DNA of 64,000 nucleotides. Origin: Botryllus schlosseri (taxonomy: Eukaryota). The stretch covers positions 9,114,001-9,178,000 of the forward strand of contig CM119386.1 of assembly GCA_051294905.1 (NCBI GenBank), read 5' to 3'. The position numbers were made by a program, and so were the translations under genes. This document shows positions 8,376 to 42,176 of this stretch, piece by piece. Positions within the stretch are counted from its first letter, which is position 1. Each line of letters begins with the position of its first letter. The notes below the pieces were generated by a model. That model had not been told where the DNA came from and did not search any database. It saw nothing but the letters and a program-made list of their open reading frames with translations.

Positions 8376-8839
8376 ATGGCGTCGTCCGCATCTTCACCGT
8401 CGCACAAACCCGAAAAATCGATACCAAGCGAGGGCACGGCGTTCCTATTGCGGCGCAGCCGCCAAAGCAGGAAGTCCCCATTGTCTTCCCCGGCTATCTC
8501 AAGAAAATCAAACCCTGGGCTTGGCACTGTGGTCGAGACCACGGAAGCGGATCAAAGCAACGGATTGCGCCGCCCTAGGACTATAGCCCGACCGCGATCG
8601 CCCAGTCCCAGCCACGAACACCAACGGATACCGGCGCCAGCCTTTTCGCCGATGACAATGCGAAGGTTGGAGAGCAAGCATCTGGCCGCGAAGATACGGC
8701 AGTCTTCCAACGCGGGCTTCGGATCTCCGGAAGGACGGAGTCCGGTTTCGTCTCCGGTCGGGTCTCCGTCTATGATGAGAAGGATTATCGTGGGGAGAGG
8801 CGGCGTGCAACGTAGAAGGTTCACACTGGCGAAAATGAA
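8376..8839 (+). CDS. PDE4: PDE4 alternative first coding exon A (long isoform, PDE4D5/PDE4B3-like N-terminus)
   Basis: ATG 8376 plus 154 codons + 2 nt, ending ATG AA|gtaagt (phase 2, in frame with 41991 giving ...RRRFTLAKMN-FDENG). The end SPVSSPVGSPSMMRRIIVGRGGVQRRRFTLA aligns ungapped with recalled PDE4B3 SPRSSPRNSPCFFRKLLVNKSIRQRRRFTVA. Confidence 0.87.
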
Positions 8840-9242
8840 GTAAGTGCATTTTGGAAATCGGTCAGATATCATCATCGTCGAGTCGAAGAAAATAGCAACA
8901 ACGTCAGAAATATCAAACAAAATGACATCACAAATATCGAATCTAATGTTTTAGGGGGCAAGGGCGTCTTAGGTAGCTATGCCGATGATCACTTCATTTA
9001 GATACAGTGGTGACTCACAGGGGGCTATTGCGCCGTTGAAAAAGGATTTCACATCGATGATATTGCTAATTAATCAATTGCACGGATTTTTGAACTTAAT
9101 TGAAATATTATTGGCTTGGCGTTGGATTTGCGAATTGCAGGAATATTGCAGTAGAAAGTGTTATTCTTAATTCAGTCATAGGCAGGGTATGTTTTGTGAA
9201 ATTACTATATTTCCATCGCAAGATCAAATGTTAAGACTAGTC

Positions 9243-9345
9243 GCGCTAGAAGTCGGCAGCCACGGAATCAAATTGAAAGAATGCAAGCCTGGTGTAAATG
9301 ACCATTACAGTCTAAAAACACCTTGAATACCACTAACAACAACAA
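9243..9345 (+). mobile_element. SINE 3' fragment
   Basis: aagtcggcagc...gcctggtgtaaatgacc...aaacacc...(aac)n tail. Confidence 0.7.
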
Positions 9346-10284
9346 GCCGTTAGTAGTGGTTGGAATCATGTTGAAATTATACGTGATAAAATACCTGCCC
9401 GCAAATGCCTGAGAGAGAACAGGGTGACATCGATAGACCTTACATGGTAAAGTAACTGCTGAACCACACACACATCGCCTATTAACTATATATATTTGGT
9501 TATTGAGGTGCGGGTATAGAGTTATATTTGTACCATATGCATGCGTATAGCCATACATTATTCATCCATCGTGCAATAAAGGGCTATGTATAGTAGTAAC
9601 CCATAGCAACAGTGAAATATATGTTCATTTCGAATCTAATTTAAGGTTCGGATTTCGGATGAGTAAGGAGAACCCTGCTCGGTATATCGGATCGATTAGA
9701 TGTCACGAGTTTTGATATAGTCCGACATACGGGGTTGTCGCGGTATACCCTACTATTATCATGGCACCGAACGCCGTGGCATGAAATGGGAATTTAAGAC
9801 TAAAAGGCCAGTTGCTTACGGTTCAGTACATGCACCAAATGATGATGGATATTGCTTTGGAGCGTTGGAATCAATTCCAGTCCAAGAAATGTGATACGAA
9901 GTGTGATAAGAATAGAGTGCAACACCGGGATATGTTTTGACCTCTGTTCCTACGGCCTATCACAAAAATTGATTTATCGAACGTTCACATCTTAAAAGCA
10001 GGATTATTGCTTCTGTTACTGGACGCTTGACGTCAGAATGTGTACGGTATTCATGGATGAGTGCGTTTCGCTTCAATTAGGGATGAGATTAACGGGAAGA
10101 TTGGATTTGCGGTCGGGCCGATATGTGTAGTGGCAGTTTCCCCTGACTAAATGACATTGAATCGCGTAGTCGAATTTCGCGGCTACTGCAAAATTGATAA
10201 CGATTGGAGTAGCGGGTCTGGTCCGATGAATTTTCTGGTGTCCCTAGCCGACTTTTATCAATGTATTTCAACGACATTTCTACT

Positions 10285-10499
10285 GATCGAGGTCGACTCC
10301 AGAATTCGTTCAAGTGTTGGAGGTTTATCTAGCCTCCTCGTTGTCATGTGATCCGTGTAAGCGGTATCTTACGAAATCATAGAACAAATTTGGCCGTGCT
10401 ACAAGTCGGCAGTTCAGGAACCATAATAAAGAATACCTGTCTGGTGTAAATGACAGTAGTAGTCGAACCACCATGATTACCAAAATCCACACAACGACA
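10285..10499 (+). mobile_element. SINE copy, 5' decayed
   Basis: Shares ggtcgactccagaattc...ggaggtttatctagc...ctggtgtaaatgac...accatgattac with the other copies. Confidence 0.8.
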
Positions 10500-10665
10500 T
10501 TCTAATTGCCGACAAATTGGCATCCTGCCTCAATTTCGAGGTAAATATTTTCATCACAGATGACAATAAAATTCCACTTGAAGAACGCGAACACCATAAA
10601 ATACCAATGCTTGGATTGGTGGTGAGGACAGGGGGCTACATAGCCTATCTTACCAGACTTTATAT

Positions 10666-10730
10666 CAGGGGTCACCAACACGCGGCTCGCGAGGTCACAT
10701 TTTGCGGCCCGCGACCGAATTTGAGAATTC
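10666..10730 (+). mobile_element. hAT-like terminal fragment
   Basis: CAGGGGTCACCAACACGCGGCTCGCGAGG...GCGGCCCGCGA is a typical hAT/Charlie terminus; the other end was not found. Confidence 0.5.
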
Positions 10731-12049: not shown

Positions 12050-12757
12050 TTGGTGTGGTAACTGTCACGCTTAGATTGAAGATTTTGGTTGTGAGGAATT
12101 CATCCATTAATTGTCAACTGAAATCCATTGATATTCTAGATCTGGGATGATCTGCTCCCATCAGTTGTGTTGCTGTTAGTGTTAGTCTGTTGGCTTAGGT
12201 ATTGTACCATAAATATTCGAGACCTTCTCTTCTTTCGAATTCAGTGATCCAGGACCGTACGCTTTTCGATATGAAAACTTCATTTTACCCAATGTACCAT
12301 TATAAATGTGGCATGAATTGATATTGCACAGAACAAAAGTATAAGTAGCCACACTAACGCGCATATCTAAGAAGCATGATCTGTTTTATTTACACTCAAT
12401 TTGCTCCTGCCCCAACATCATTATTTCTATTTATTCTGGATTGGATACGCAGAGCAGAAGTAGCAGGCTCGATTCACACTGCTGTCTCAATAACCCTACT
12501 AGCTAGTGATTCCAGTGCCGGTCCCGGACACAGTTGCGGTAGGAAGGACATCTGGTGTAAAATGCACAACCTCACCGAATTCATGATGCGGATCACTGAG
12601 ACTTGATTAACAGTGGCCACTGCGAAAGTCGACAATGCACAATGCACATAATATCCCAATACATGGTTTTGCTGACGAAGACGTTCTACCCATACCAGAT
12701 GACGTCATTTGCTACTATAGTAATCCTATAATCCGGTACAGTGGTACCCATGCCATG

Positions 12758-13017
12758 GTATAATCCGCGGCTGCAACACCAATGGGTGCGGGTTCGAGTC
12801 CGACCGAGGTCGACTTCCGAATTCCGATACCTAAGTGTTGGAGGTTTACCTAGGCTCCTCCTCGCCACCTCATCCGCGTTAGCGGTGTCTTACAAAAGCC
12901 TAGAGGTGGGCCGTGCTATAAGTCGGCAGTTACGGAAAAATAAGAAGAATATAGGCCTGGTGTAAATGACCATAGTAGTCGACAAACACCATGATTACCT
13001 CAAAAACAAACAAACAA
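12758..13017 (+). mobile_element. tRNA-derived SINE copy flanked by 77-bp direct repeats
   Basis: B-box GGTTCGAGTCC, same body as 11766-12049, (CAAA)n tail; flanks 12681-12757 and 13018-13094 differ at one base. Confidence 0.88.
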
Positions 13018-14470
13018 ACGTTCTACCCATACGAGATGACGTCATTTGCTACTATAGTAATCCTATAATCCGGTACAGTGGTACCCATGCCATGCAGCTG
13101 ATATCTATGTTGCTGTGACGTTTTTTCACATTTAAGCCTCCCGCATAAGCCTTCTTCACGATCGCTGAGAAGATGGAATACGTGAATGGAAAATAGTATA
13201 TATCTCATACACAAATGTGGTGCGGTTGTATATGTCATCATCACATTGAACTCATGAATGCTGACCTCACATGTGAAAGTCTTATACAATGCGCACCACG
13301 TAGTACCCTGCAGTAGCTCAGCCCGTTCCTAACATTCTAGCAATACACACAAATGTACGGCGGTACGCGCGCGTGTTTTGATAAGAAGTGGACAGTGGAC
13401 ACCTGTTCTCTGCTGAATAGATGCAATCAATAAAGACAACGAAATTTCGTATCAGCTCGTACTCACGGCAGCGATCAAATGACCGACATTTGTTGGAGAC
13501 GGCCCATTCCTTCGTAGGTTATATCTCAACTATTTCAAGGCGTGATAGACAAGCCTGTCGGGAAGTTTAATTACGAATATTCATGTGCAGTGCATCTAAC
13601 CTACTCTCCGTATAATAAATAATTCAGCACTGAGTAGCGTCAGACGTAATTTTCGTAAAGGTACGTACTGTACGTTGTACAGTACATGTTGTACGCGTAC
13701 GACCTTGTACCTTGGCGCACCCCGCATATAGGTCGTTTGATGCAGATTTGCTCTTTGATTTCATATCATGAAGGATAGGACAGGGCGATAAATTTGCGAC
13801 TCCTGGTGTGAGTGGAGTTTCGCGAAATGGTTCTTGTATTGCTTGGTATACGGTGCAATCGTGTGTTTTTATTTGCGGGTCTCAAACTAACTGATTCTTG
13901 AATCTCCATCTTAATTATTGCGCTAATATCATATTCAACCCGCGTTCCTGTGTCTATTGACGAGTGAATGGACGTGAAATTATAAATATTTGACTTCGTC
14001 AATTCCCTGGCGCCGTGCGATGCCTTTTTGCAAATCGAGTGAAGTGGTGGCGGACGGTTTTCAAGTACGCAGGCGGCTTGGAACGGAACAGGCGGCCATA
14101 CGCGGCTTACTTGTGTCAACTTTCCGCTTGGAGATAGGTAGTGCGTGTTCTTAATAGTGTAATATTAGTCCGAACGAGCGATCCCACCGCTAAAGTGTTC
14201 TTGACGCGAGAGATATCATCGATACCATTGAAATTTCGAGCGTATTGATAAGAACATAGCCGCGAGCTGTGAGAGTATAGCTGGATACAGGAGACGCGCG
14301 CAGGAAAGTGTGCCAGTTGTCGGGATGCGAGGCGTGGGAAGGTAGGGACTCCGCGTCCGTAAATGCCTTTGGGATTGTATGCGTGTATCTGTAGCGTCCG
14401 CGATCGACTTAATTATCAATGTTTATCTGCGTCATCGAAGATAGACGGGAAGCTTTGGTTTGCTAATACT

Positions 14471-14923
14471 TAGGGCTGGGCAAAATCGAGTACCTGAGTT
14501 GATTGGATTCAGAATGGAGTATTGGGTATCACTCAGTATGACGTCATAACAATATGAATGATGCGGAAAGTTCAAATATGTACCTTTTATGAAACAATCA
14601 GAAAAGCATGCCAGTTCTGTATCACATTAAAGATAACTTGGTATTTTTTCGACCCTATCTCTCATTGTGCTTTGTGCCAGTTGCTGCGGGCTGGCCACGA
14701 CTTCACAGATGTGCCATTTCCGCTGACGTACGAGTCTTTTTACTGGATGTTGTGTGTGCTGCGCTGGGACTAATCGAGGTTTCAATGCCTCCACGATGGA
14801 AAATAGTATAGATACTATAGTTCTCGCTCATAATATAACTCTTATTGGCAAGGAGCGTATAATTTCAGTTCTTGAAAACATGATCTCTTTCGAGTGAGTA
14901 CTCGAAGCATTGTAACCAGCCTA
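14471..14923 (+). mobile_element. hAT MITE family 1, diverged copy
   Basis: Starts TAGGGCTGGGCAAAATCGAGTACCTGAGT, collinear with the 23334 copy, degenerate right end. Confidence 0.8.
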
Positions 14924-17900
14924 ATGCGAGTAGTGATTCTTCGAGTCGAGAGTACAGCTACCGGTCCTCATGAATGTATGCAAATAACCATTGCGTTCTC
15001 GATGTCGTGATTATAGGAGCGATGCACGCAGCGGTGTGTTTGGAAATTCAAATTTTAGCGACTCCGCTCGGCATTTTCCCAGATACCGCCGCGTTGTGTG
15101 ACGCAATCTGGCAAACTATGGTATCTGCATTCCATCTTGACTGTCGACTGTGTCGAGGTTTCGGCACGCTTAATCGAATCATACGACAATTATGTCTCCT
15201 GTTTTTCTGACGATTACCAAAATGCCAGGCCATGACGTCAGGAAAAAGATCGACTATTGTCAGACACGATTACCTGGTACCTGGTATCCATCGGCTTTGG
15301 TATTTTCGAAATTAAGATCCATCTATCTCTTACTTTCCACCTATCTCCCCATCTTTTGCATATATACAAACTCGTATAATGCTATCGACCTTCTCAGATT
15401 CAGCACATAGAACACCCGAATTGTGTTCAGCATGTTTCAATAACAGTTTAATATATTGTACCGTTTTGCCAGCGATAACAGCACTGCTCAACTTTTGATG
15501 GATAGCGTCAACGAGGTAAAGACAAATAGCCACCTGTATTCTTATGTCATAGGGCATGCAAGTTGATGCGAGTGCATGAGTTGTATATCAGGCGTAACAG
15601 TCCCTGGTATTTATCACGATAACAGTCGCGATATTTATACGGGCTACCTGGCCGAGTTTCGTGTTGCTAGTATATTATGGCGGCTGTTGTTCAATGTTCA
15701 CCTTAGTCATTGTTGGCAACGTTGGTATCGGATGTAGCGACAGAGCCCGGATTGGTTGCTGTAATTCTTAAGCACAAGGATTTATTGTGGCATAACTTTG
15801 AAGCGCATCAGATGAAGAAATATAATTGTCCCAGTTGTATTTGACCAAGTACATAGTCGTGCGAAGAGAGACTGGATAACGATTAGTTTTTGTACGCTGA
15901 GACACTGTAGGTATAATTGGACATGCTCTTTATTATTTCCCTTGTGTATTTAGTTTCTGTTACTTCGTGAGGCGCGCAATGCGGAGACAAAAAGCCTTGA
16001 TGTCTTGATGCCAAGCCATCCGACTATGACAAATCACAGCGAAACATCTTAAGTGAATTTATTTCCAGAAACAAGCGATGCAGTGTTGTCGATGTTACAT
16101 GCAAAGGCGAGGCACGTAGTCGCTGGTTATAATTCAGCGTTATTGTAACGCAGACATAGGATATAAACTCGGATTGAACTGGCAATTTATTGTGTTCTCA
16201 TTGGTCTCGATATTCGATGTAGTTGTAAGTAGTTGGTACACGTGTTGAACGCGATTCTAGTGTTTCATGATGTAGCACTTTCAGTGTTGACATGATCGTG
16301 AAGTAATTCGCAGAAGTGACTTTTGGCTGTTCGTGCCTATGGCGCGAAAAGTGGGTGTTTAAATTGTAAGGAGGATCTGAGTTTTGGCCGGATTCTGGAT
16401 TTATGTGATCTATCCGCTGTCGGAGTGGGATATGCATGATTGGATTAACACCAGGAGTCTGTACTGAAAAATGAATTTAGATCAGATTTAGATTATGAGA
16501 ATATTGGGCAATTACTGCACTCTCCCAGTTTCATCGGTTGTGATGTCGTCGACATTATATTCTTATTTTCACCTGGATGAGACTTGATACTTTTAGCATT
16601 GCTAGTCGTATTATGCCCATATTTTGCTGTTGGATATGTTTGATTTGGTTCTGATTTAACGTGTAATCGATACGCATCGATAAAGACGGAGAAATCCACG
16701 ATTGCACAAGCTTGCGGCAGCAATTTTAGTTCGGAAATGTTGTTGGTTGGGGAATCTCCGCATCAAAACGCATTAACGCGAACACCTGTGTGTTTATATA
16801 ACCTTTGACCTCCTACTTTTAATGATATACCTCGTTGTGACAGGCACGGAATTACATTGAAGGGGTATGAGCAGTGAGCACCCCTGCTTATGAAACCCGC
16901 TCCAGGAACTATAGCCCACACTAAATATATTATCCTCAATAAGTTGTATGTTGAACTAGCTAAGACAAAGATTGTTAAATGCAATCTAATGAAGTTATAA
17001 ATCAGCGTTCCATCACGCAATTCTCAAGCACTGTCGGTTTATCTTTCTTAAAAGTGTTTGCCGAAAAATTTCATGCCCTAGCCTCATCCACTGCGGTGAT
17101 ATGATAACAGCTAATCGCTGTCACTTGTGTCTTATCGGTCATGTAACGTGCCGCTGGGAATTGCAAGTTCTTGTTCATGCTAATGCATCCCTACCTATTC
17201 TTGTCTCGAAAAATCTATACTAGCATCGTTACTTTGTTCTATATTCGGTTGCGGTCAATCTGCTATATTCCTCAATGCAGTTGAAGTCATGCGCAGCTCG
17301 TCAATCCCACCCCCAAAGAAATCAATGTTTTAGCCAGTCATGAAGGTGTTTCAAGTTGAAGGCGGTTCAGGTATGTTATGACCTTGCAGGCAGAACGGTT
17401 CTGGCCCTTCTGGGCCCTGCTAGCAGCAGCAGAACAAAATATGAAATGTGTGATGTAATTGCAATCATATATATATTAATGAAGGTGATGTACCTTGCCT
17501 AAGTGGACGTAGTGTTAGAAAATCATATATTGTTAACAGCATTTTACACTGCGTCAAAAAAGAGCTGAATGAAAAGAGTGACAAATTAATCATGATGTCT
17601 ACGCATGTATCATTGTAGTTTCGGTGACGTAAAAATGTTCAACTTAACTCGTCTTTTGTGTCTCTGGGTTGCGTCCGATTGTATCGGAGCGAAACTGCTT
17701 CTGGAACTCTTAATGCCGCTGTACAATACATATTTAGCTTATCTGTAGAATCCAAATCCGAAGCCTAATTCATTCACAACCGACACATGAAATCGATTGT
17801 CTATGGCCCGACCCGGTTTATGAAACTTTATATACCTTATCCGAATCCGGTTAATACTATCTGTGACGTACCCGCACTTTACAGCAGTGGCATATTACGT

Positions 17901-20070
17901 CATAAACCGACCTCGAGGGCGATCTGTCGTTACACCTAATCTAATCATTAATGCTCATTTCTGGGAATATCGCGTATGATTGCGCAGTTATATAATCTCA
18001 CACGGGCCATTGTGCCGTGAACAATATCCCTCGGTGTACATGTCAGAATTCTTTGCCCCGGGTGAGAATCGCCGATGTAACGCGATGCTTTCAATTGTCA
18101 CTGTCATCCTTCGCTATTTTTGTGTTCTGTACATTGGCCCGGGTGTGTGTGTCACTGTCCAGCGTCCATTCCTTAGTAAGCGACTGGAGGTGTCGGTAAC
18201 CGCCACTAATCGCACATGGAATGGAAAAATTCTGCGAATCTTGCTTCAGGCTTGTAGATTTCACCTTGTTGTCGTTGTTGAATGTAGCGCCGTGTCTTGT
18301 TTGATGCTTTTGCGATATATCCTCACCGTATCATTGGACTTCTTGTACGTGTATAGCAGACAGATGTGTGATCACTCTGATCAGCGACAGGTAAAGCGCA
18401 GATCCCATTTCAAAGAACGAGCCCACCAGCTTTTTTCTGTCGCAAACCAGTGTTGAATGTGTGCGATCGCATTATGATAGTGCCGGTGGTGGTGTGCCGC
18501 ACAAGTGTGTTAAAATCGGTTAGGTTTGTGGATATGTCCCGACAACAGCGATCGGCTGATATGTAGGATTTGGGGATTATCTGATCGGTAGAAATCTAAC
18601 AATATCGTGAGGGAGGTCATTATGCTGTCGCATTGCTTGCAAGTACTTTGATTATTTCGTTATATGTACGTCAGGTCTGGGGACGTTTTGTAATTCTTAT
18701 GCTGCGTTGAGCGTTGGTGCTTGTTATTGCCCGTTCCAGGTTGCTATGATCCATTGTATGCCCCACTCAATGTTGGACTGTCACTAATAATATCCGCATT
18801 TCTGACGTGATAAACCACCTTCCTGGTTTCGCATCATGAATCGCGTTTAGAATTACAATGGCTTATAGTTGAAACTGATAAATTACATATTGTTGCATCC
18901 CGCAACGTGACGGACAAGTGGCAACATTCTTCGCCGAACTTGGTCAGACTTTGGCTGTGCACTAGAGCTAATTGCCGCTGAGCGAGTGTTATCTCTGTCA
19001 AGAATTTTGTTATTTTCGAAGAGAACAGGCATTTTGTCCACTTCGTAATTTGCACGCGATGTCGCGATGAAGTCCTGGAAAATACATCAGTTCACCTCGT
19101 CGTTAGAAACGTCAGTAGACAATGTCAGGATACGTTTGCACTTCGGTATCAGTAGATTATATAGAGCAGGACACTTATTCCGTCGCTAGCTCACATTACC
19201 GTCGGTGCGCACTCGGCATATTACTATCACTCTGGAAACTTACACACGTCGCTGTGACGTCTTATTCAGCAGTCATAATAGGCAGTGTCACTATAGGTAA
19301 CAATCGCTTATACGATATTTGTCGGGCTACTTTTAGGTCACTCTGTTTGTTTGTGAATATTGGCAAACTTTCATTCGTTACGGTCGTACTACACACTCTC
19401 GCCTTTCTTGCGTATGGCCCCGTTGAGGATTATTTGTATAAATCGCGCTGCAAATATTATTATCTCACCAAGCTGCGTGTGAGCCCATTCCCGGAGGAGT
19501 TGGTGTATGATGGTGATGGTGTTCCATTTATGATATCAGGGTACCTTCGCAGTGTCAGATTCCAAAAGAAAATGCATTTTCATGTACTAGATTCGTGGAG
19601 TGAGATGGTTCATACTCAAGAAATGTTACTGCTGAAACGCAGTTTGTTTCAGAATTTCTCAAGGATCGGTAGCTAAAGAGCAAGCGCTCGAGAATCATTT
19701 TGAGTTCGATTGGTGCTGTGTGCTTCGTGCTCTCGCGAATTATGCGGACCTCCATCCGCGGCCTTGTTGTCAGCACACATATCAATGCAGCTGAGGCAGA
19801 ACGTTGTTAATTATGCAAAGCGTTCTACAGGTGCGATGGATGTTTTATCTATTTCATAGCACGTAATAGCACCCGCAGTGAAGGCTATTATCTGGCGCAA
19901 TATTTATTGTACAGACGCATTTTGAGAGGAATTGAATGACACAGATTTAGCGCCGCGTTTATTTCCGCGTGATGGATATTGCGTCTTTGCAAAGGGTGCT
20001 TTTTTCGCCCGAAATCACAAACTAAACCTTCCTTGTTGTTAGGATAGAAACAATGCGTTAATACACTGTA

Positions 20071-20558
20071 ATGGACGCGGCGAATTGTATCGGGAAGGTC
20101 TTGAAAGGCTCTGCTATGACAATACCACACACCCTGCCGATCGTGCCGATCATACATTGCAACGACGGCCCGCTCGTGGAGAGAAAGGAACGCAGTAGTG
20201 ATGCTAAGTTGGAGGAATATACTGAAAGGCGTCAGTTTTACAAGTTTCAATCGTTGTCCTGTGGGGAAATGAAGGGTACCTCTGCGAGCACCGATACATA
20301 TGACTGTGACACCAATAATAACACCTCAGCCGAGAAGGCTACCAACTCCACTGCACCTTGGCGGCGTCGGGACGTACACGATCGTTATCACGCACTCTCG
20401 GAAGACTCCGATAGCGACGTGGAGACTTCCAAAGGGCGCACACTGCTAGTGCTGCCTAAATTGTCAATCGGGAGACGGCGGACTTATGGCCAGCAAGCTT
20501 TAAGAGAATGGCAAGATGATGCCAAGCAGAATCAGTACCGTAGACACTCATGGATTTG
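20071..20558 (+). CDS. PDE4: PDE4 alternative first coding exon B (long isoform, PDE4D3/PDE4B4-like RRHSWIC end)
   Basis: ATG 20071 plus 162 codons + 2 nt, ending TCA TGG ATT TG|gtaagc. Splicing to 41991 gives YRRHSWIC-FDENG, versus recalled PDE4D3 PFRRHSWIC-FDVDNG. Confidence 0.87.
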
Positions 20559-20595
20559 GTAAGCGGCATGTTTATATTTTCGGGGTTGTCTGGCT

Positions 20596-23850: not shown

Positions 23851-23980
23851 GTTGGCTCCCATCTCTCGAGCCTAGCATGCGTTAGCTCCAATCTTTCGAT
23901 GGCTTGGTGACAATGCCGTTAGGTGTTTGTTATTAGCGATTGTAATTAAAGAGCGACATCGCTGAACTGAATGACATCGA

Positions 23981-24406: not shown

Positions 24407-24430
24407 TGACGTCATTCCTTTGTGACGTCA
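24407..24430. promoter_or_regulatory. Paired perfect CRE sites (TGACGTCA at 24407 and 24423)
   Basis: Two palindromes 16 bp apart, outside any recognised repeat, about 40 bp upstream of a candidate mini exon. Confidence 0.5.
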
Positions 24431-24470
24431 TCGAACTCGCATGCCTAAGGAAAATTAGCGTTCGGCGCCT

Positions 24471-24514: not shown

Positions 24515-25774
24515 GTATGTGTTCAGGTTTATCTTGCGCCGTGGTGAAAACCACTGAAAAACAGTGGATCGGTGCCAACAATGGTTTTTACACTAGATGT
24601 ATTTTCTGACGCAAATCCACCCATTTATCCCACAATATTTGTCTGAAGGTTTACGCCCTATGTACTTCCTATCGCAACTTACCGATTTACCAGGGCGAAG
24701 CATTGGTTTTGCTCATCGGCGACTTGTTTCTTACGAAATAGTTATTTGGTATCGAGCCTGAAACCCTTGCTGTCCGAGACCAGAGGTGTAATAACTAGAG
24801 TGGCAGTTCGTGATGCAAATCCTAATACCGTCTGCCTGTCTCTATTGATACAGGATTGGGAATTGGTGCCTTTTCATCACCAACCACATTAGAGTTGATC
24901 GAGTTCGTAATCTTTTATCATTATTTTGTAGTATTGACCTCTCGTGCTGCGGATGCTTTACATTGATGTGGTATCTGCGTTGGAGCTTTCGGTTCACGCG
25001 ATACCCCAGTTGGCACCCGATGACATATAGCGCATCGCGATGATATATTCATGTTCTATTGATGGGTAACAGCAACGCGCAATATTATATCGCCAATCCA
25101 ATTATGTGCGCAATCCGCCGTCCCATGACGGGAATTGCGAGCCGCTGCATGATCAATAATTCATGTCTGCCGACGGCAGAATACTTTCCATTCCAAGGTC
25201 GTATATTACGTATTAGAAAATCACGCTAATTCCGTCGGAAATGCAGCGGTTATCACCCGTCGGTGACGCTAACCAGACCTGTATCGCGCTGCAAAATTTG
25301 ACTAACCTGTAGAACTAGTCCCTTGTGCACATAACTCATAGCCCATATTGATATTCCTGAGTTGTTTCGGGTTCCGTAGTTGTAAAGTAAGTATTCCCTG
25401 CAGCAGGGGCAGTCATACGCATAATTCCCCAAGTGATAATTAGGAAAATGTAACCGGGCGACCTGATGAGGTGATGGGTACCCACGCTGTTTGTGTAAAT
25501 TGATCTCGGTCGCGCCTTGCTGGTATATTGTGTCCCGTGTGTTATGGTCGCGTTGGAGCAATTAGCATTGTAATTCTAGAATGTTTGTGAATTCGGGGAC
25601 CATAATTTGTAAACGCTGTCCTGGGGCTGCACAGTGAGATCTTCTGTCCCATTTTAATATCATGCACTGTGGTTTCATAATATGCGGCGTCACAATTAGC
25701 AAGAGCATCCGACGCCCTATTTCGGTGTTCGGAAATCGTTTGTTCGATGTTATTTGTATTCTGTATAAGCTCTG

Positions 25775-31674: not shown

Positions 31675-31928
31675 ATGTCAGATACTGACCATTGCCAGTT
31701 TTGCGAATCCTGCTGGTGTATTCCAACATATATGATTAAACTTCAATCAGGACTAGGCCGTGTCATGCCATTGAACCACGACATAAGCACTTGCAATGGA
31801 TACACTACCCCAATGTCGTTGCCTATTCCAATACCTGGTAGGCGTGGATTACTCGATATGCAGGATATTGCGAATCGCACTTTTCCGAGCAGCCAAAGGA
31901 AAGGTTCGATAAAGCTGAGACCTTATCG
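31675..31928 (+). CDS. PDE4: Candidate PDE4 alternative first coding exon (MSDTDHCQFCESC...QRKGSIKLRPYR)
   Basis: ATG, 84 codons + 2 nt, near-consensus donor TCG|gtgagt in phase 2. Contains an RKGS PKA-type motif and a PMSLPIPIP segment. CpG-rich upstream sequence. Confidence 0.55.
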
Positions 31929-34900
31929 GTGAGTACACCAGCAAGTTCTGTGACAATAACCGTGATATTACATCACATAATGTGCTCAAATGGTTTATGT
32001 TGATGTGTAAAGAGAGAAGTGAGACTATTTATTAGGTATGCTTGTCTTCTATTGAGAAACTTGAAAATTCTTTTTCTTCTCTCGCATTGTAGATATCCGA
32101 ACTTGCGTCAGCGGCGCTATCCAAAACTGCGTTAATATCGGACCGAAATTTAAACTTTGTGGTTTTAGCCTGTTATGTGCGGGCTATGTGATTCCGAGTC
32201 GAGCATAGATACGCGCCAATAATCCCTTATCGGCCGTGACAAGCACATCCTGGTTCATTGTTTAGAAGTCTATTCGGATACGGACCGATCGCGGTGTGGC
32301 GAGAAATCGCCATCGCTAGCGATTCCTGTGCGCTTTGTTACCCCCGTTTACAAAGAAATCATTGACTTTAGGATCACATCGTTACAAAACTATTGAGACA
32401 ATGTGCGTCGTCCGTAAGCTTTTGGGAGCTGATTTTCACTTACAGATCGGAATTATTATTGGTAGTTTCCCTTTAATTGACAGCATCGATACTGGTGAAG
32501 TTTGCTTTGTTGCCTCGGATTGGGCATTTGCGTCGCTCACTGGTAAAATCGATATGCTGATATCATATGTGTGTGGCCGGGTCTTTATGATAAGTATGTT
32601 TTCTGTGGGATATACTTTTAAGTGGGTAATCCATCCGGAGTGTGGTATTTGCGGTAGTTGCTATTGCACGGGACATATATAGCGTCGGTATTCCGTGAAA
32701 ACCACCATGTTCCAACGATGTACTGCGTATCAATTTTCTGTATTTGAAGTTTATGCTGTTGATATCATCAATTTTTCATGGTCTCCGAGATAAAAAGAGA
32801 GTATATACGGAAATTGAATTAGTAGGTGTAGCTCACCGAATCCCGTTCATCTAATATGCATTTCCTACTTCAAGATTCTGTTTTCGGAATTGTCAGGTTT
32901 TAGTAAATTTCAAAGGCGAAGAAAGCGATTGTGCGGCTGGGATTATGCGAATTAGTATAATTTATGAAGATTTTGTTCGAATCCTACGGTAGATATGATA
33001 ATGCGTATCGATTTCGTAGCTGTGAAACGTTCCAAGACAAAAATTTGAAGCTTGGCGATGGTTGCAATTATCTGATGCGGTCTTATAAACGCGGGTTACT
33101 TTCAAATGATATCAAATTTTTGTGGAACTGTGATCAGTCAGCTGATAGCATTGAATTCGGCAGCTGTGCGAATGGTTTCTTGCCGAGCACGCAGGCAAAT
33201 GATCGCATTCCATTGCAAACTCACTATGAATATTGGTTGCGGCTAATCCGTCGTAGTTTTGAAATGCGTTATATCGTATGAATTGTACTAGCTTTATTGC
33301 GGACGTATATGATATTGTAATTGACGTGTTTTCTAGCAGCCTATACCAACGTGGAACGAAGCCGCGCCGTGTGTTAGTCAGATAGATTCCTAGTCCATTC
33401 ATATGTAATGAGTGAAATTATCGTAGCGGTTGAGTCGTTACTTAAGGTTTGAGGAAGGATGATATGGATAAATACTGTTCAATATGAATATACTATTAAA
33501 TTGTATATTGAAGTTCTGTACCTCCAAGAAGCTCTTTAAATATTGTTCAGAAGCTGTGGTTGCGTACGATGATGTAATATGCACCGATTCCGGATTTTAA
33601 CATACGGTGAAACCCGAGTTGTGCAGGATATATAAACAACACTATACCGCCATGGCATGAGGACTTCTTTTCTCGAAATGCCTGTGCGCGATTGCCTGTG
33701 TTGAGGTGCACTTGAGCGTGAAGCGTCATGTAACAATGCTCCACAATGCCGAATTTATTGCACTGCACACGGTAGATTAGCGCCACAGTAATGATACCCG
33801 GAAATAGAGGAGATAGAGTATGGTAGCCGCATCACGTTTGATCGTGTCATCTAATGCATAGTTTACGGGCTGGCGTATTTGCGTTTTGCCAATCATAAGC
33901 GCGCGTCGATTTTACCTAGAAAGGGAAGGTATATTTTTCTGTAATGGAGGGTCGCTGTTACTGCCGTAACTGCAGTGTATGCGTGTGTACTTAGCTGTAC
34001 ATGTTCCGAATATTGCGTATAGTTTAGGAAACTGATAGCATGTCATAACGAGTGGGCAATCTGGGCATGTCAGTATGATCACCTCATTTGTATCGGCTCA
34101 TGACTGAGGAAGTTTGTTCGCTCGAGTGATGTGCTGGTTTGGTTTAGTTCGGAAGGCCTACTGGGCTCTAACCAGCGTTTCGTGTCCTGCATTTTCGGTG
34201 ATGGACTTGCGTAGTGATACAATGACCTAGTGCAGCACAGTCATCGGGTTGTCTCATTGTAGTGTAAGCTGTCAAACTAGAGAAAGCCGCTAGCAATGCG
34301 CCAATTACGTCATCCACCTTTATTCTGTCCATAACTTATTTCCCGATGTCAACTCTCATTCATACATAGCGCGTCGCGGTTCTTGAATAAGTCGCGCGTG
34401 AGCATTAGATCGAGCAAACAGTGTAGCGTGTTGCCACGGAGTTCTATAAACGGTTCCAAATTTTTCCTTTTCGAAATGCGTAAGACAGGCCTTCCTATGT
34501 CTGGCGGTATGGATAACATGCAAGCAAAGAGACGCAGACCTCCGTCTGCCATGAAAACAGGCAGAACATTCCAACCTACGGCGTTCACTTTCAGGTATTC
34601 GTTTGCTTGTGACATAGCTCGTTTAATATCTGTATCCCGAATCATCAGATCTTTATGTGCTGAAAATCTCAAAATTCAATATGTGTTCAATGTACATTGT
34701 ACAGTACATGCACGACGGTACGTACGTACATTCGTGGTAGGTGATATCCATAATCTAGGTGTAACTGGCACTTCATATCTAGAAGGTGCCTGGGTACGAT
34801 GTCACAAGTACCCGGCGTACAGTACTGTATATGTGTAACAATTGGTACTTTTAATGATCTGTGTGTATGCGCTAGGTAGAAAATTGCGTGCATATAGTAG

Positions 34901-37020
34901 GCACAGTGAATAAGGAAGTTGTGAGCAGTATTTGTTTGCCAGGAACGTATCCGGTATTGCGCTTCCGGTTTTCATCAACTCGCCTAACAGCAAATGACTA
35001 CCATATTCATAGCATTGGGTTAAGTTGGCGATGTGAAATATGCCTCGGCGAAAGTCGGTAAAAGCGACCGGATATCCATCTCATTAGCCACGATTTGCCT
35101 TCGTTGCCATTAGCGTTGAAATGTCTCCCCTGGACCTGTTTATGAAACGTATGAACAAAACATATATAAGTGGTATTCAAGCTTACTCTTCCGCCTAACA
35201 ACCGAACCAGTTGCATCTTTCTGAAACATATCTCGGGGACGCGGCCTCATCAATTTTTAAGCGATTTCAACATTTGTCGCTTTGTGCTGCACAGTGCACA
35301 CGCCTCGACGGCGGACCGTATGCCTTTGTTAGACGCTTCGCTGCATTTGCAATATTTATGTATGTAGTCGGGCCTGCCAGATTTTGCCAGTATCACTGGC
35401 AGATTGCTCTCTTCGCATACACAGGAAGTACCTAACTTGAGCGCTTTGCTTATTCTGGACACTTTCCCGGGGTTATGATGGAGCATATGCGGTTCGCATC
35501 AGCATACCCACGAAAAAGAGCTGTCATTTCTGTCTTGCTGATAAACGGGGCGTTAATTATGTCAAGAACATATGCTGGTCATGACGCGCGGCCTTCGTCG
35601 CAATGGAGAAGGGGTAACGACTACCACTTGTCTGTACCCGCCTCGATTCCATTTCACTATATCGGAGGCATTGCCAAGGTCTCGTTAACCACTAGTGGAG
35701 ACTTAATTTCATAGTCCCAGTAGCCTCCAAAGCTATCAGTACCTGTTTTCGCCGTTGCGTACTATACGAGGGATGAAATGTCTTACCAATAAGTTGGATT
35801 CAATCAAGATTTTGAATGTCTGAATTGCTATAGTGATAGTCGAATTTCACAGTTCTGTACTTCTGTGTCATATTGATAAGGGACTGAACGTATTTGCAGA
35901 TGCGCGCGACGGTGCCATCAGTACGCTGCGAGGCCTGCTTGGTTGGAATGTTTTTGATGGTTACCACCTGCCCAGATTGAGGACTGTATACTCAAGCTCG
36001 TGCTCAGTCTACCTAAAGAACGTTAATAAGTTAGCATACTTCGATAAGGCATCAGCATTATGTTGATGCCTTATGATCTCATTTGCTCATCAGTTATATC
36101 CGAAGTCAACTCATTACGTCACCCGTCTTCATTCGTCGCATGACAAGATAAATTCTTACCCTTGTTCAGAATACATAGAGTAAAAATAGAGATAAAAATA
36201 GCAATAATGCAATTCCGTCCCCATCAGATATTTTCGACTGCAACTGCAAGTGCGACTGTCCCCGTCCCCATTATGGCCGAATAGCCGTGCGAAAAATGGA
36301 TGTCGTGCTTGTCCTGATCAAGACACGTTCGAAATCCCAAACACTTCGTAAATTTCGATACGCAAACACAGTTAATTAGATGCGGTTCGGATCATTGTTA
36401 TGTTTATATAATACTTGCGCGTAACTCCCAAATATATAAACCTAAGAGCGCACGTTCGTCTCTCTGCCTATACTGCCATTCTTGAGGGGAATCCCTTTAG
36501 TAAGTATTAATTAATCATTTTGCTGACGTAATGAGTAGTGAATACGATTCCGAAATATCATTGCAGTGTTAGTATTGAGTCACTACTTCGAGTCACAAGT
36601 GATTTCGAGTCGACCCTAGTCCACCAAAAATTTCCACTCGGTGTTGTTTGATTTAATGTGCAGATGTAGATGCAAGACTGCTAGACCTCTCCAAACGTAT
36701 TTAACTTGTCATTTCGTTTGTAATACTATGAATAATTACTAATAATATAAATACAATCAATAATTTAGTAATACGATAGGCGTCGTGTGTTATTTATTTA
36801 TGCCGCTGTGAATTCTGCTCACTTGATATACTCCATGCTGAATAACAGTGGAGTATATTTCAATTGAAGTGACGTTTATTGACTGAAATGGTGCATGAGG
36901 GGCGAAGTCAGCACAACCAAACTATGTGCTTGTACGTACATTGTACAATATAATTCGTACATGCGTGTATTTAAACATGTGTGATATGCAGATGTTCAGA
37001 TACGCAGATACTCAGTAGTA

Positions 37021-37064
37021 AAAGCTCCACACAAACGATACCAAAGCTCCACACAAACGATACC
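37021..37064. repeat. Perfect 22-bp tandem duplication
   Basis: AAAGCTCCACACAAACGATACC x2. Confidence 0.9.
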
Positions 37065-37365
37065 AATTGAACAAATTGGTGCATGTTGTTTGTAATGAAC
37101 CATAATGCCAGTCAAACCCAGTATGAAGGCAGTTTACGGGATACCGGAGCTATTTTGTATGCTATATCGCGGCTAACGGAACTAACCATATCGAAAACGT
37201 AAATGGAATCCTATAAATAAAGGATTGGTATTGATGACGTGTTATCTCTCGTATGGCGGAGAGGTTCGGAATGCTTTGCGAAGTAGAATATTTGATGACT
37301 TGGAACTTGAATTGAAAACATGTCCCCGAGTCACTAGTCCTTCCACATTTGTCGTACCACTCTGT

Positions 37366-37410
37366 CTCAATTCACCTCATTACTCACTGGCTCAATTCAC
37401 CTCATTACTC
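37366..37410. repeat. 20-bp direct repeat with 25-bp period
   Basis: CTCAATTCACCTCATTACTC at 37366 and 37391. Confidence 0.85.
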
Positions 37411-38131
37411 GAGTGACTGTCTTGAATCAAGTCATTCCAACCTGGATATTGGCCACATGGTATGCACCCAACATGGAATGCTAAATCTACCTGCATCGTA
37501 TGTAGATATAAGTTCTAATTTGCTTAGATTATTTCGCTTATTTGCTGTATATAAAGTTACTTTTAGACCGTATAATTCTACCTTAAATTTACCCCGACGG
37601 ACTGCAGGTCTGCTTCATGGAAATGCAATTAAGACAAGTCCACGTAAGATAAATGGCAAGTAACGGTCTCTTGGGTTTATTATCGATCCGGACTGTGTGG
37701 TTCTTCCGCGATCCTGAAATAGCAGCACGAGACTTCGCATCGGAATGGCGAAGTATTTGGGTTGTTGTGTGCAGATCTTCTGTATATGCACGCGGAATTG
37801 CCCGAAGACACGGGTTTGATTATGCCGACTTGGTGTTGTGGAATGCTGTTGGCACGCCACGTGACGGGGTCTGGCTTTCGCTAAAATGTTTATTTGTAAT
37901 TATTTGACGACCACTACGCTGGGCCATATGTTTACCTAAGGTGGTGTAAGACAGCGTCATTTGGAAGTTTATTCGTGAATGTGCGTCTTGTATGTTGAAG
38001 GATTTATTGATACAGTCAGTTGGCCTGCAGTAACCACTGCGATACCCTAATAGTAACTGTTCTCAGGTAGCCTGGTGTACGTGAATATGATTTACTGAAA
38101 GGGTGTGCTGTGGAATAGAACCGATAATCCT

Positions 38132-38394
38132 ATGTCTGGTCGTAAAGAGTCGACACGCGATAGCTTCGCATTGAACCTACTGCCTTCAAAAATTCGCTTT
38201 CGGTGTCCTGAATGCCAGCACTCGACTTTGAAGTGCGTGTTCTGTCACGCTAAGTGCCTAAACCTTACGAGTGCGGCCGTTCGAGCGGGAATATGCCGTC
38301 GAAATATTGTCGAAGTTGTCCAGCTCCGGAACAATGGCTCCATTTCAAGCGACTATGTTTGCAAAGTTTTAATCTTTTCGTTTGAAAGACCGTC
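38132..38394 (+). CDS. Candidate PDE4 alternative first coding exon, Cys-rich
   Basis: ATG, 87 codons + TC|gtaagt (phase 2). MSGRKES start and CPEC...CVFC...C motif. No homology recognised. Confidence 0.35.
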
Positions 38395-39936
38395 GTAAGT
38401 CTAATCCGTTGAGACAGCGGCCCGTGTTGCTACGTCAACTGAAGCTATAGTCTATAATCAGGTAGAAAACAGACCGATGACCGCAGTACAGTATTCCATA
38501 AATTTATGTTTTAGTTTGTCGGATTGGTGATATTTGGTAGAGCTTGAGCACTCCAGTAGTCGTGTGGTGACAGTTCAATGGGTGTCCGTTCCCCATGCTT
38601 TATGTGCACGATTCAAGATGCCTTTGCCGTAGCATCAAGATGAAGCTATCAACTGCAGGCAGCACGAAGTTTTGAGGCAGCATTAGAACTGAGGTATTCT
38701 TATCAGTTTTGACATACTGTATAATGGGAAGTGAAGAAGCTGTCTTGCAGTTCATTTTATTAAAATACCAGGATACATGCTTCCTGGTCGCGTCAGAGCA
38801 ATGACATCACGTCAGTGCGGTTAGATTTTCCTCCAATAAAAATGACATAGAGTTAGTAGTTGGTGTCAAATGCGTAGCATCAGCGCATGTGTATTTTCGG
38901 CTCCGTAGACGGGATTAATTGCGTTTTGATGTTCGTACTGATACGACTTCGTGCCAGTCCTTGATTTCGACACAGTAGTTCTCTATATCTTCCTTGACAT
39001 TCAGAAGGGTTTCTCATTAATTGGATTCGCAACATATGTCGTGCTTCCGATGGTCCTGAAGAATAGACGACACAACAATTTGACTTGTTCGCTCAATTTT
39101 TCTTCGCATTATTCTTGCCAACAAGCAACCTCAGATTTTACTCGTCTGGAACTATGTATGAACCTTTTGTTTCATTGCGCCTACATGTGGAAACCAGTCA
39201 CGAACAGGCTACTTGCGGCTCACGTTCTCATTGCAAATGCTGCTCGTCCTTATCTACGAACTGATCCGCTTATCAGCGAAGCCACGAATTCCCTCCATGC
39301 CGTTTCTGAACCGTAGCCGTTATTTCCAACCTCTCATGGGATGCCACCGCTATTTATACAACGTAATCTCCTAGATGACAGCTCCTACGCAAGCAGTTAG
39401 TGTTCCCCGCGACAAGACATTCGCGTATCGCTAGCATTTCTCGCGCGACTGGGTCTCCGCCAGATTCGCGAAGGTGATCACTGGAAGTTACTCACAGCAT
39501 TGTATGAAACCTTGTCTCGTGGACAGTTCTAGATGCAATCTGCCGTCAGGAAGTGATAGATACTGTGGGGTTTGCAAGTTCTATGGTATTTGTGGTAGAA
39601 AATCCTCACTGTTGGCTTCATAATCCTGACAATTGTCTTTATTATTCGACTTTCTCACCCCAATGACGCAGTGCAGTTGTCCGTATTATTGCAGACGTTT
39701 CACGTGTACTTTGGCGTAAACGTGTGGTCGTTGAACATGCTTGGCTCATACCTGTTAGCAATACTTATTACAGGTTCAGTACATTGTTTGAACGGTTGTC
39801 TTGTGTAGCAAATTATGGACTATTCTCGTATATTTACTACTAGTACGTAAGGAAACGGCAGTATTAGTCGTTCGAATATGGTTGGTTTTTGAAGAACTCT
39901 CGAATCGCGTTGGTAGTCGTTGAGCTTGTAGCAATT

Positions 39937-40466
39937 ATGGATATGTCCAACGCAATAGCAACCACCGGAGCGCGCATTAGAAGTTCCTCATTTGGTGCAG
40001 GGTCTAAGACCGGTTCTCCCCCGATCGCGAAAAAGCACTTTCCGGTCAGGCGATTACATAGTTTAACGGAACACAAAGAACTGGTCACCGATCCCAAGTA
40101 TGAGAACCTCGTCCTGAAAATACCCATCACCCCGCTCTGTATCCAACCGGTCATAAGAAACCCGTCGGGCTCCTGCAATCAAGACACGCCCAGCGAAGAA
40201 CTCAACCCAGCCCATGAGTCGAATAGCAACGTCAAGCACGCGCAGCAAAGGAACACGTCTGACGCGGCGATGTCGGCCGACAACAGCCTCGAAATGCAGC
40301 CGTACCTGTTGGGAAAGCCTCCCGAGTCGCCTCTTAGGAAGTCCCTGGCGCTATGGGACGAGAAGGATAAATTCGATCAGGGGCTGAGCGTGGCCCACCA
40401 GCAGTGCCGGAGGAACTTCAGAAGTCGCTGCTCCCTCCCGTCGATATTTTTCGGCGAGCGACATAG
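39937..40466 (+). CDS. PDE4: PDE4 alternative first coding exon C (long isoform, PDE4D4/PDE4A4-like end)
   Basis: First in-frame ATG at 39937, 176 codons + AG|gtattg (phase 2), GC-rich coding-like composition. The end RSRCSLPSIFFGERH-S-FDENG aligns with recalled PDE4D4 [21 protein letters not shown]. Confidence 0.85.
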
Positions 40467-41422
40467 GTATTGGTCACGTGTGGTGGAGACCAAAAAGTAC
40501 CTTTAGATACAGGGTGCGAGGGTTGCACTGTTAACTACGTGAGGAGTATACAATTGAATGATGTACTAATACTGAATTAGATCTGAATATTTTCTGGTGC
40601 CACTCGTCAGGGACAGTCGTCAGCAACTAGTAGAGAATCGTAAAGGACTGACGAGTATCAGTCGAAAATATTCGGGTTCTATTTCATTATGAATATATTA
40701 TTCTATTGTATTCCGCAGTTGTGTTGTAGCGACGTTCACTGGCATGGTCAGCATTGTAATTTGTAGGAGGGGTGGAATATTTCGTCGGTGTCAGATTACT
40801 TCAAAAGAGTTCACGTGATGATCATCACGTCATGTCATGAATCTAAATTTTTAAACCGGGAGCCTCTTTTACCCCTGTGGGGACGCTGTCTGCGCCAACT
40901 GTGACACGCAGCAGTATTCAGTGTTCAGGGATAGAGCTAGTATTGGAATCCCTGTTTTAAATTTGCTTTTTGGTCTCCACTGGTCAACCGTAGATTTCCA
41001 CTCTATTGAATACATACTTGACTGACCCTGGTTAAAGTGATTGAACATAATTTCAGTACGACCTCCATATGATGTATGTTCTTCCGTGTGGTAGTTATCA
41101 GCAACGTTCTGCTATGACGCGGCCGTCACATGCGATTGACAGTAACAATAATAAGTACGAGTTGACGTTTGAAATATGTATGATTGTCGTTTTGCATGTA
41201 TAATCATATACTTCCTATTTGACCCGAGTACAGTTTCTGTTTTTCTAGTCTATAAAAACAGATGTGCATCGAGTCAAAATAAATGGCCTACCTGAAGGAA
41301 GAGCCAACGAAGGCAGAGCCCAATGACGCCTTAGTGGCGCTGAATGCGTATCGAGGACAGATTATTGTAGTAGGACTTAACGGTATACATTCTGTTACAG
41401 AACATTGTCTTACCATAAATTG

Positions 41423-41587
41423 AACTATTTGAGCACAGTGACATAACAACAAAATATAGAACCGGTCCACTACGATTGTCTTTAGTAGGGCGGGGCAAGG
41501 ATACACCGCCATGTCCTGTATAAGTTGAATTATTTGATGCTTTGAGTACAGTGACTTAACTAACAAAATATAGAACCGGTACACTAC
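41423..41587. repeat. Diverged tandem duplication (shared segment of about 50-60 bp)
   Basis: ttgag(c/t)acagtgac(a/t)taac...acaaaatatagaaccggt(c/a)cactac occurs twice. Confidence 0.7.
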
Positions 41588-41990
41588 ACTCATTCTTGGC
41601 AGGATGGTGAAAATATACAATCTCTCTCAATGCCTGCTTGGCTGCCACCTTATCCACCCACATCTATCATATTGTACGAAAATTGATGAGGTACCGGGCA
41701 CTACGAAAGATGCGACCAGATGTTACAAGATTCGATGCAAGATTCGCGCGTGTTGCGCATCTAGTTGGAGCGACCTAATCCGTTAATTCTCGTATATGTA
41801 ATTTGCGATAACGACTGAAGTTATCAGCTCATTCACACTATCTTACATCCACGCCACATTTATGACCGCAACAGTGTTTTGTTTACATCAGTTTGTGCCG
41901 AGATGCGCGCGGATTTTCGCGATAATCTGCAATTATTGTTCAATTCTGAAAATTGATGCAGGTGATGGTAAATCTGATTTGTTATTTCAG

Positions 41991-42176
41991 CTTTGACGAA
42001 AACGGCATCGGCCGCAACGCAGTCGACGCGCAGTCGTCGCCCGGGTCCGTGATCCTGAATCCCGCGCCGTCCGCGCATCACGGGAACAGACGCGAATCGT
42101 TCCTGTACCGCACGGACGCGGATTTCGACCAATCATCACCTCTCGCTTCGAGGGCCTCCTCCATATACAGCGACCA
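41991..42176 (+). CDS. PDE4: PDE4 common long-form exon 1 (start of UCR1, PKA site RRESF)
   Basis: Acceptor ttatttcag|C TTT GAC GAA; donor GAC CA|gtaagt. Encodes FDENGIGRNAVDAQSSPGSVILNPAPSAHHGNRRESFLYRTDADFDQSSPLASRASSIYSD. Confidence 0.97.

Follow-up and report, generated by a model that had tools for sequence, protein, structure and literature searches.

Alternative 5' coding exons of a tunicate PDE4 gene and their likeness to the PDE4D5 and PDE4D3 N-terminal types

The long isoforms of the vertebrate PDE4 genes begin with alternative first exons, which are arranged in tandem upstream of the common exon preceding UCR1 (Johnson et al. 2010). That paper, the sole study dedicated to the evolution of PDE4 N-termini that we could find, proposed that each paralogue gained its long-form N-termini on its own through sequence drift, for the most part in tetrapods and mammals, with Ciona serving only as an outgroup. 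Full-text searches on the evolution of PDE4 isoforms and N-termini returned no report of homology between tunicate and vertebrate PDE4 N-termini. Drosophila dunce, likewise an invertebrate PDE4 with UCR1 and UCR2, has several promoters and 5' exons that give rise to different N-termini. The present analysis concerns a stretch of 64,000 nucleotides (nt) from Botryllus schlosseri (assembly GCA_051294905.1, contig CM119386.1, positions 9,114,001 to 9,178,000 of the forward strand), hereafter the window, which by its coding sequence would represent the 5' half of a tunicate gene for a long-form PDE4, the dunce-type phosphodiesterase specific for cyclic AMP (cAMP). It contains at least five mutually exclusive 5' coding exons, two of which closely resemble the N-termini of the vertebrate PDE4D5 and PDE4D3 types.

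The 5' exon array and its splicing

The five exons, designated A, B, D, E and C in their order along the DNA, make up an array of about 32 kb and would all be spliced to one acceptor, at 41991, which opens the common exon 2. Lengths are given in amino acids (aa), with the residue of the split codon in brackets and a slash marking the exon boundary; X1, X4 and X5 are RNA-labelled sequencing runs.

8376 to 8839, + strand: 5' coding exon A, 154 aa plus split codon, ending ...SPVSSPVGSPSMMRRIIVGRGGVQRRRFTLAKM(N); from its open reading frame (ORF), donor, conservation and homology
20071 to 20558, + strand: 5' coding exon B, 162 aa plus split codon, ending ...NQYRRHSWI(C); from its ORF, donor and an RNA contig of X5
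31675 to 31928, + strand: 5' coding exon D, 84 aa plus split codon, ending ...KGSIKLRPY(R); from an RNA loose end of X4; donor CG/GTGAGT, phase 2
34476 to 34594, + strand: 5' coding exon E, 39 aa plus split codon, ending ...TFQPTAFTF(S); from an RNA loose end of X1; donor AG/GTATTC, phase 2
39937 to 40466, + strand: 5' coding exon C, 176 aa plus split codon, ending ...CRRNFRSRCSLPSIFFGERH(S); from the RNA joint 40466 to 41991 in X1 and X4
41991 to 42176, + strand: common exon 2; from its acceptor ttatttcag/C, its donor CA/GTAAGT after 42176 and its reading frame

All five 5' exons open with an ATG and close with a GT donor in phase 2. An earlier, sequence-only reading of this DNA had started from three long ORFs, at 8376-8843 (155 aa), 20071-20562 (163 aa) and 39889/39937-40506, which were said to stop exactly at phase-2 donors fitting the acceptor at 41991. 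The letters of donors and acceptor confirm the fit (AA/GTAAGT after 8839, TG/GTAAGC after 20558 and AG/GTATTG after 40466, all in phase 2 relative to the ATG), and ORFs A and B indeed end at a TAA within the donor, but ORF C continues for 13 codons beyond its own. ORF length is in any case weak evidence, since comparable + strand ORFs of 150-184 aa lie at 17980, 19122 and 34383; long ORFs not being rare in the window, the case rests on other evidence and, decisively, on RNA.

This evidence comes from Logan contigs of the three RNA-labelled runs and from raw reads of a fourth run, X23, placed on 36500-42400. The junction from 40466 to 41991 (GT..AG) is present in contigs of X1 (depth 14) and X4 (depth 12). 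A contig of X5, 1090 nt long, carries 454 nt ahead of the joint at 41991, the final 30 of which are those of 20529-20558, the end of exon B. The loose end of an X4 contig ahead of 41990 supplies 29 nt that equal 31899-31927 with one mismatch and so identifies exon D, and a loose end in X1 supplies 24 nt that equal 34565-34588 exactly, in exon E, the next letters, TTTCAG, being common to the acceptor region. The upstream partners of exon 2 in RNA are thus exons B, C, D and E, and its downstream partner is an exon at 52221, with whose sequence, TCACGGCGGCGAAGATC..., contigs of X1, X4 and X5 continue behind the donor at 42176. The X23 reads, 11 in number and all on a repeat, sample the region too sparsely to be informative. 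The proposed array of alternative 5' coding exons is hence borne out, with five exons instead of three because RNA adds D and E; two of the three junctions that had been anticipated, from 20558 and 40466, are found in RNA contigs, and the third, from 8839, is not.

Exon A, whose junction to exon 2 would be marked by the sequence CTTTGACGAAAACGG, is known chiefly from comparison. Homologues of its ORF occur in Logan assemblies at 95, 71 and 64% identity, with the C-terminal 70 aa nearly invariant. At the corresponding locus of a related species, DNA similarity is confined to 8403-8556 and 8644-8845 and ends at the donor, which reads GTAAGT in both; given a synonymous difference (pS) of 0.81, which is saturated, and a nonsynonymous difference (pN) of 0.14, exon A appears to be under purifying selection, with conservation that ends at the exon boundaries. 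The N-terminus of isoform X1 of the PDE4 of another tunicate, Clavelina lepadiformis, is 40% identical to exon A over 133 aa (E 1e-12), and the NCBI model of that isoform joins the A-type exon to exon 2. Furthermore, RNA-labelled runs contain 0.24-0.40 of the interval 7876-9339, of which exon A makes up 0.32, as against 0.6-0.8 for probable DNA runs; this is consistent with an exon-limited presence but does not prove it. A search of the ESM Atlas with exon A gave chance-level matches only. One Logan sample, SRR25569784 (P0001, P0003 and P0180), holds exon A ORFs 95% and 64% identical as well as an exon C ORF 53% identical to those of the window, and would be either of mixed species or from a relative with two diverged PDE4 copies.

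Each product of the array would be a long-form enzyme in which an N-terminal peptide of its own is followed by the RRESF exon, UCR1, UCR2 and the catalytic domain. Each 5' exon most likely has its own promoter, by analogy with vertebrate PDE4 genes, and the role of the different N-termini is presumably to target the enzyme to different partners or to provide phosphorylation that is specific to an isoform.

Exons A and B beside the vertebrate types, and the array in Clavelina

Searched with exon 2, a set of 1.84 billion representatives yielded 170 phmmer matches at E <= 0.001, nearly all of them N-terminal parts of vertebrate PDE4 proteins, together with one tunicate protein, which a cluster look-up identified as the Clavelina lepadiformis "3',5'-cyclic-AMP phosphodiesterase 4C-like", isoforms X1 and X3-X9. 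The peptides that precede FD.ENG in these matches were extracted and fell into seven recurrent vertebrate types (names as in the sources):

D5 type, ...SPRNSPRLLRRMLL....QRRFTVAHTC: Myotis 4D X6, grass carp 4D X14, Pongo and Homo PDE4C, Corvus and Egretta 4C, salmon 4C-a, stingray 4C-like
D3 type, ...SRRHSWIC: stingray and Hemitrygon 4C-like
D4 type: Hipposideros 4D-like, shark 4A-like, Calonectris 4A
D7/B1 type, LQLPPLSWRQ...LP.I.IT...: Saimiri 4D X9, herring 4B-like, stingray 4C-like
D9 type: birds 4D-like, lamprey 4D-like
D8 type and "PIDI" type: the remaining two of the seven

The D5-type end is thus found under both names, 4D and 4C, and the stingray 4C-like protein has the D3-type end; that several types are common to different paralogues argues against their independent invention.

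Profile comparison with hhalign aligned exon A with the D5 type at E 3.4e-7 over 33 columns and exon B with the D3 type at E 1.5e-6, all other cells in the matrix of five tunicate exon families by seven vertebrate types being 0.009 or worse. A six-frame scan of the window with a hidden Markov model (HMM) of the D5 type retrieved exon A at E 1.3e-6, the next match standing at 4.5, and scans with the D4, D7/B1, D8, D9 and "PIDI" profiles retrieved nothing; the best D9-profile match (23876-23962, E 0.17) does not fall at the end of an exon and was discarded. A gapped test on the last 30 residues placed the A-type and B-type exons of both tunicates above all 3000 null peptides. A test anchored at the junction was at first run against all 142 N-terminal fragments, where intron-retained junk N-termini blurred it, and was redone with 35 curated vertebrate ends. 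Exon A then scored 28 (fraction 1.3e-3) and exon B 46, a score of 40 being reached by none of the 63,858 stop-free 14-mers of the window.

Within exon A the conserved block is formed by the last ~33 residues, an SP-rich part followed by a basic one and by QRRFT[VL]A, which abuts the FD.ENG junction. To judge from these profile matches, exon A is orthologous to the N-terminus of the PDE4D5 type. The block presumably corresponds to the last part of the unique region of PDE4D5, where beta-arrestin binding was reportedly mapped. The unique region itself measures 88 aa (PMC7460819).

In exon B, the residues RRHSWIC/FD are identical to those of the stingray PDE4C-like isoforms P0168 and P0169 and likewise abut the junction, so that exon B is best taken as the orthologue of the PDE4D3-type N-terminus RRHSWIC and retains the RRxS consensus of protein kinase A (PKA). 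The serine of RRHS is, we assume, Ser13 of PDE4D3, and that of RRESF, in exon 2, Ser54. Phosphorylation of PDE4D3 by PKA at Ser13 increases mAKAP binding and at Ser54 increases activity (PMC7770493). The short unique region of the D3 type, 24 aa in the stingray, is found neither in exon B, with its ORF of 163 aa of which at least 454 nt lie in one RNA contig, nor in its counterpart in Clavelina, a B-type ORF of 176 aa. The sequence-only reading had assigned the three exons then recognised to D5, D3 and D4 types; the former two assignments agree with the profile matches, and the last has not been established.

The evidence on exon C is indeed divided. Its ORF has a homologue (P0180) with 53% identity and a conserved end. 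The segment RSRCSLPSIFFGER scores 32 against the D4 type both in the gapped and in the first anchored test; hhalign aligned exon C with this type at the exon ends (E 0.018), and with the 35 curated ends it scored 30 at offset 1 (fraction 5.6e-4 per offset). The gapped test against the D4 type gave p ~0.03 for the exon of the window and p 0.11 for its relative P0180, and the Clavelina exon at the position of C scored best against the D7/B1 type instead (p 0.013). The assignment of exon C to the D4/A4 type is weak and ambiguous. The D7/B1, D8, D9 and "PIDI" types had no counterpart that the HMM scans or hhalign could detect in the window, and Pfam holds no family for exon 2 or for any of the five N-terminal exons.

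The PDE4 locus of Clavelina (on OX392443.1, in locus coordinates) provides a second view of the array:

12518-17298: distal unit of isoforms X3/X5/X7, NCBI models
24876-25412: A-type exon
33282-33812, + strand: B-type ORF, ATG-started, 176 aa, unannotated, ending ...AQFRRHSWI + TG/GTAGGT in phase 2
38442-38792: D-type exon with PIPIPGR
41316-41405: short exon, 31 aa
45171-45458: C-like exon
45684: start of exon 2

The unannotated ORF between the A-type and D-type exons matches exon B of the window at its start (P.TL.IVP.IH, E 0.001) and at its end (E 8e-4), and looks like a PDE4D3-type first exon that is absent from the NCBI isoform set. The X7 unit had been considered as the counterpart of exon B and was rejected in favour of this ORF; the annotated Clavelina N-termini of X3/X7 and X6 had no significant BLASTP match with exons B and C. 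Exon D shares 8 of 9 residues with Clavelina isoform X4 at the same position of the array (SLPIPIPGR against SRPIPIPGR, E 0.002), and the position of exon E is matched by the short exon of X9 (ending ...KVFSFN), with no significant similarity in sequence. The two tunicates, although their sequences can otherwise hardly be aligned, therefore have the identical order A-B-D-E-C-exon 2, and by their position D, E and C too are supported as conserved exons. Besides this order, the two loci have in common the A-type exon, the PIPIPGR motif and the ends FRRHSWI and YRRHSWI; they differ in the distal 5' unit of Clavelina, which is not matched anywhere in the window. Used as query in a word-indexed search, the N-terminus of Clavelina X1 (region 1-180) returned no matches, probably because isoforms are merged in one 90% cluster.

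Gene identity and other features of the window

Downstream of exon 2 the window contains the following coding exons:

52221 to 52260, + strand: start exon of UCR1, HGGEDLIVTPYAQ; from the RNA loose end behind 42176 and tblastn
54811 to 54893, + strand: UCR1 exon, VLASLRRIRNDFINLTNI...; from tblastn (69% identity to Clavelina), the 3' end being predicted
57874 to 57989, + strand: first exon of UCR2; from a motif scan and tblastn (68% identity to Clavelina)

Exon 2 is 186 nt long and translates as (x)FDENGIGRNAVDAQSSPGSVILNPAPSAHHGNRRESFLYRTDADFDQSSPLASRASSIYSD, with the pattern FDENG...RRESFLYR...IYSD; its RRESF PKA site lies immediately N-terminal of UCR1, which from 54811 onward reads VLASLRRIRNDFINLTN. 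The segments HGGEDLIVTPYAQ and VLASLRRIRNDF are 69-80% identical to the PDE4 of Clavelina. That protein carries both PF18100 (1e-45) and PF00233 in Pfam. Only the first exon of UCR2 falls inside the window, and a PDEase_I catalytic domain is predicted beyond its end. The UCR1 exon has two candidate donors, after 54865 (phase 1) and after 54893, of which the former would join the UCR2 exon at 57874 in frame and bypass the linker.

UCR1 of the window is 69% identical to Clavelina and 50% to a stingray 4C-like protein, and the corresponding values for the UCR2 part encoded here (UCR2a) are 68% and 62%. In an unrooted tree of exon 2, UCR1 and UCR2a, the window and Clavelina are split from 23 vertebrate PDE4 rows (named 4A, 4C and 4D) with support 100/97, and the highest identity of the window among the rows of the tree, 64%, is to Clavelina. 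The gene is therefore not one of the vertebrate PDE4A-D paralogues, in agreement with the sequence-only reading, which had called it invertebrate-type.

The palindromic cAMP response element (CRE) TGACGTCA occurs 16 times between 777 and 61495, where 1.2 copies were expected and the maximum in 100 shuffles was 5. About five of the copies lie inside repeated elements (12700 and 13037 have common flanks, and likewise 777, 14539 and 23426). Two similar double-CRE modules, in which TGACGTCA is followed after 8-9 nt by gTGACGTCAtcgaa, are found at 24407-24430 and 57764-57788. The latter, with a third CRE at 57650, lies just upstream of the UCR2 exon, and this cluster may represent a cAMP-responsive internal promoter like that of the vertebrate short forms. 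Behind the module at 24407-24430, a short ATG-plus-donor feature was considered and dismissed, being in the wrong phase for exon 2 and without RNA support.

The surroundings of exon C show further peculiarities in RNA. Between exon C and exon 2, the segment 40548-40710 (+ strand) has a depth of 64.7 in X1 and of up to 322 at 40657, contains an inverted repeat (opposite-strand joint 40617/40648) and has loose ends that resemble but differ from the genome, which suggests a multi-copy element; it also carries UGAUG and CUGA boxes and matches the box C/D snoRNA Afu_264 of Rfam below threshold (17.9 bits, the gathering score being 40). Upstream of exon C, contigs from RNA runs cover ~2.3 kb at 37100-39450 in both orientations at a depth of 4-9, with none over 36500-37090; a longer 5' region, an independent transcript or a transposon could account for them. 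Finally, a contig of X5 departs from exon C at 40246, where there is no GT, and continues with 30 nt, TCCTGCTCCG..., found nowhere in the window; this may be a chimeric contig or an insertion allele.

Weight of the evidence and evolutionary meaning

Taken together, we argue with a probability of about 0.85 that the whole is best explained by a five-exon tunicate array in which exon A is the D5-type and exon B the D3-type orthologue, both predating the split between tunicates and vertebrates. Several observations weigh against this explanation. The junction of exon A to 41991 was absent from all four runs placed on 36500-42400. The RACK1 interaction motif of the D5 type, NPWLNEDLVKSLRENLL (P0107), has no clear identity, by eye, with the exon A segment equally far from the junction, FSPMTMRRLESKHLAAKIRQ. 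For exons C, D and E, neither the hhalign matrix nor the gapped test yielded a significant vertebrate counterpart. The PDE4 tree has no non-chordate outgroup and places the window on a long branch, and the separate promoters of the 5' exons are inferred by analogy.

It is conceivable, given the silence of RNA on exon A, that this ORF is a gene of its own, with a single exon, which lies upstream of PDE4 and does not enter PDE4 transcripts in Botryllus schlosseri, the more so as one Clavelina annotation carries the homologous ORF as a stand-alone protein of 180 aa (P0157). We consider this highly improbable, because the ORF ends in a consensus donor, in the phase that exon 2 needs and conserved in the related species, because the NCBI model of Clavelina X1 joins the homologous exon to exon 2 and because many vertebrate PDE4 proteins have this terminal block immediately before FD.ENG. 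An equally remote explanation is that the likeness of exon B, over seven residues, and of exon A, over ~33, arose convergently, through the acquisition of short linear motifs (kinase sites and basic patches, for example). The N-termini are disordered and of low complexity, RRxS is a generic PKA consensus and nothing outside the terminal blocks aligns with vertebrates; however, the window, Clavelina and stingray agree in all seven residues of RRHSWIC and in its place against the same phase-2 junction, no null peptide came near the score of exon B, exon A matches the order and spacing of the D5 type, and of that type only, and the common exon that follows the N-termini is homologous throughout.

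Rather unlikely, but deserving more weight than either of these, is that the alternative exons are real but do not all serve as first exons, each with its own promoter; some might be internal, behind shared non-coding exons, or be preceded by a trans-spliced leader, which many tunicate mRNAs receive, so that the choice among them would partly be made by splicing. Multi-exon 5' ends do occur in this gene family, as Clavelina X3, X5 and X7 have two exons in common behind different upstream exons, and the low-depth RNA contigs over 37.1-39.4 kb would fit an upstream exon for C. On the other hand, every exon is opened by an ATG, exon D has an in-frame stop closely upstream of its ATG at 31675, three runs show an increase of about three-fold in RNA depth near 39849, where a contig of X4 begins without extra letters, both ends of ORF B are conserved between the tunicates, and the vertebrate counterparts are first exons (Johnson et al. 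2010).

If the five-exon array with its D5-type and D3-type orthologues is accepted, it resembles the vertebrate PDE4 long-isoform first exons (D3, D4, D5, D7, D8, D9) in having tandem alternative 5' exons that are joined just before FD.ENG...RRESFLYR and in the two terminal peptides that exons A and B have in common with them. It differs in that the gene lies outside the A-D radiation and has its array within the ~32 kb mentioned above, in the much greater length of its D3-type exon, in the unrecognisable RACK1-binding part of its D5-type exon, and in the lack of a detectable D7/B1, D8 or D9 type. These likenesses support, at the level of sequence, the presence of the D5 and D3 types in one gene before the tunicate-vertebrate split, and hence before the vertebrate genome duplications. 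Together with the occurrence of the types in more than one paralogue, the homologies of exon A to D5 and of exon B to D3 contradict the drift model of Johnson et al. (2010) for these two types. The claim of the sequence-only reading, that the N-terminal repertoire was assembled before the duplications, accordingly stands for D5 and D3, but not for D4, which is not established, nor for D7/B1, D8, D9 and "PIDI", which were not detected; the data thus establish an ancestral origin for a part of the repertoire only.

Whether the ancestral state extended beyond two exon types to the whole array, including its order, is a more tentative matter, and on balance we think this somewhat unlikely. In Clavelina the distal X3/X5/X7 unit is followed by A (D5 type), B (D3 type) and two shorter exons, an order that parallels the listing of the human PDE4D exons as D4, D5, D3, D8, D9 (Johnson et al. 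2010, Figure 6 legend); in the window, too, A (D5) precedes B (D3), which we regard as a lead only. The distal unit ends in RRMSEWS, with a faint likeness to the SRMSWPSS of the D4 type; the comparison of Clavelina X7 with that type was not significant.

Workers in the field are aware that PDE4 paralogues share N-terminal types, and the public models of Clavelina already show most of the array, so that these findings amount to a correction and a useful model rather than to a surprise. The N-termini of PDE4 isoforms are the accepted basis of compartmentalised cAMP breakdown, and the retention of the D5 and D3 types since the tunicate-vertebrate split points to conserved partners, or at least to a conserved PKA site. 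In a tunicate PDE4, presumed to be non-duplicated, single isoforms could be removed individually. If the order of the array should also prove ancestral, a sea squirt, taken as having a single gene, would serve as a model in which the PDE4 isoform code of vertebrates is matched one to one.

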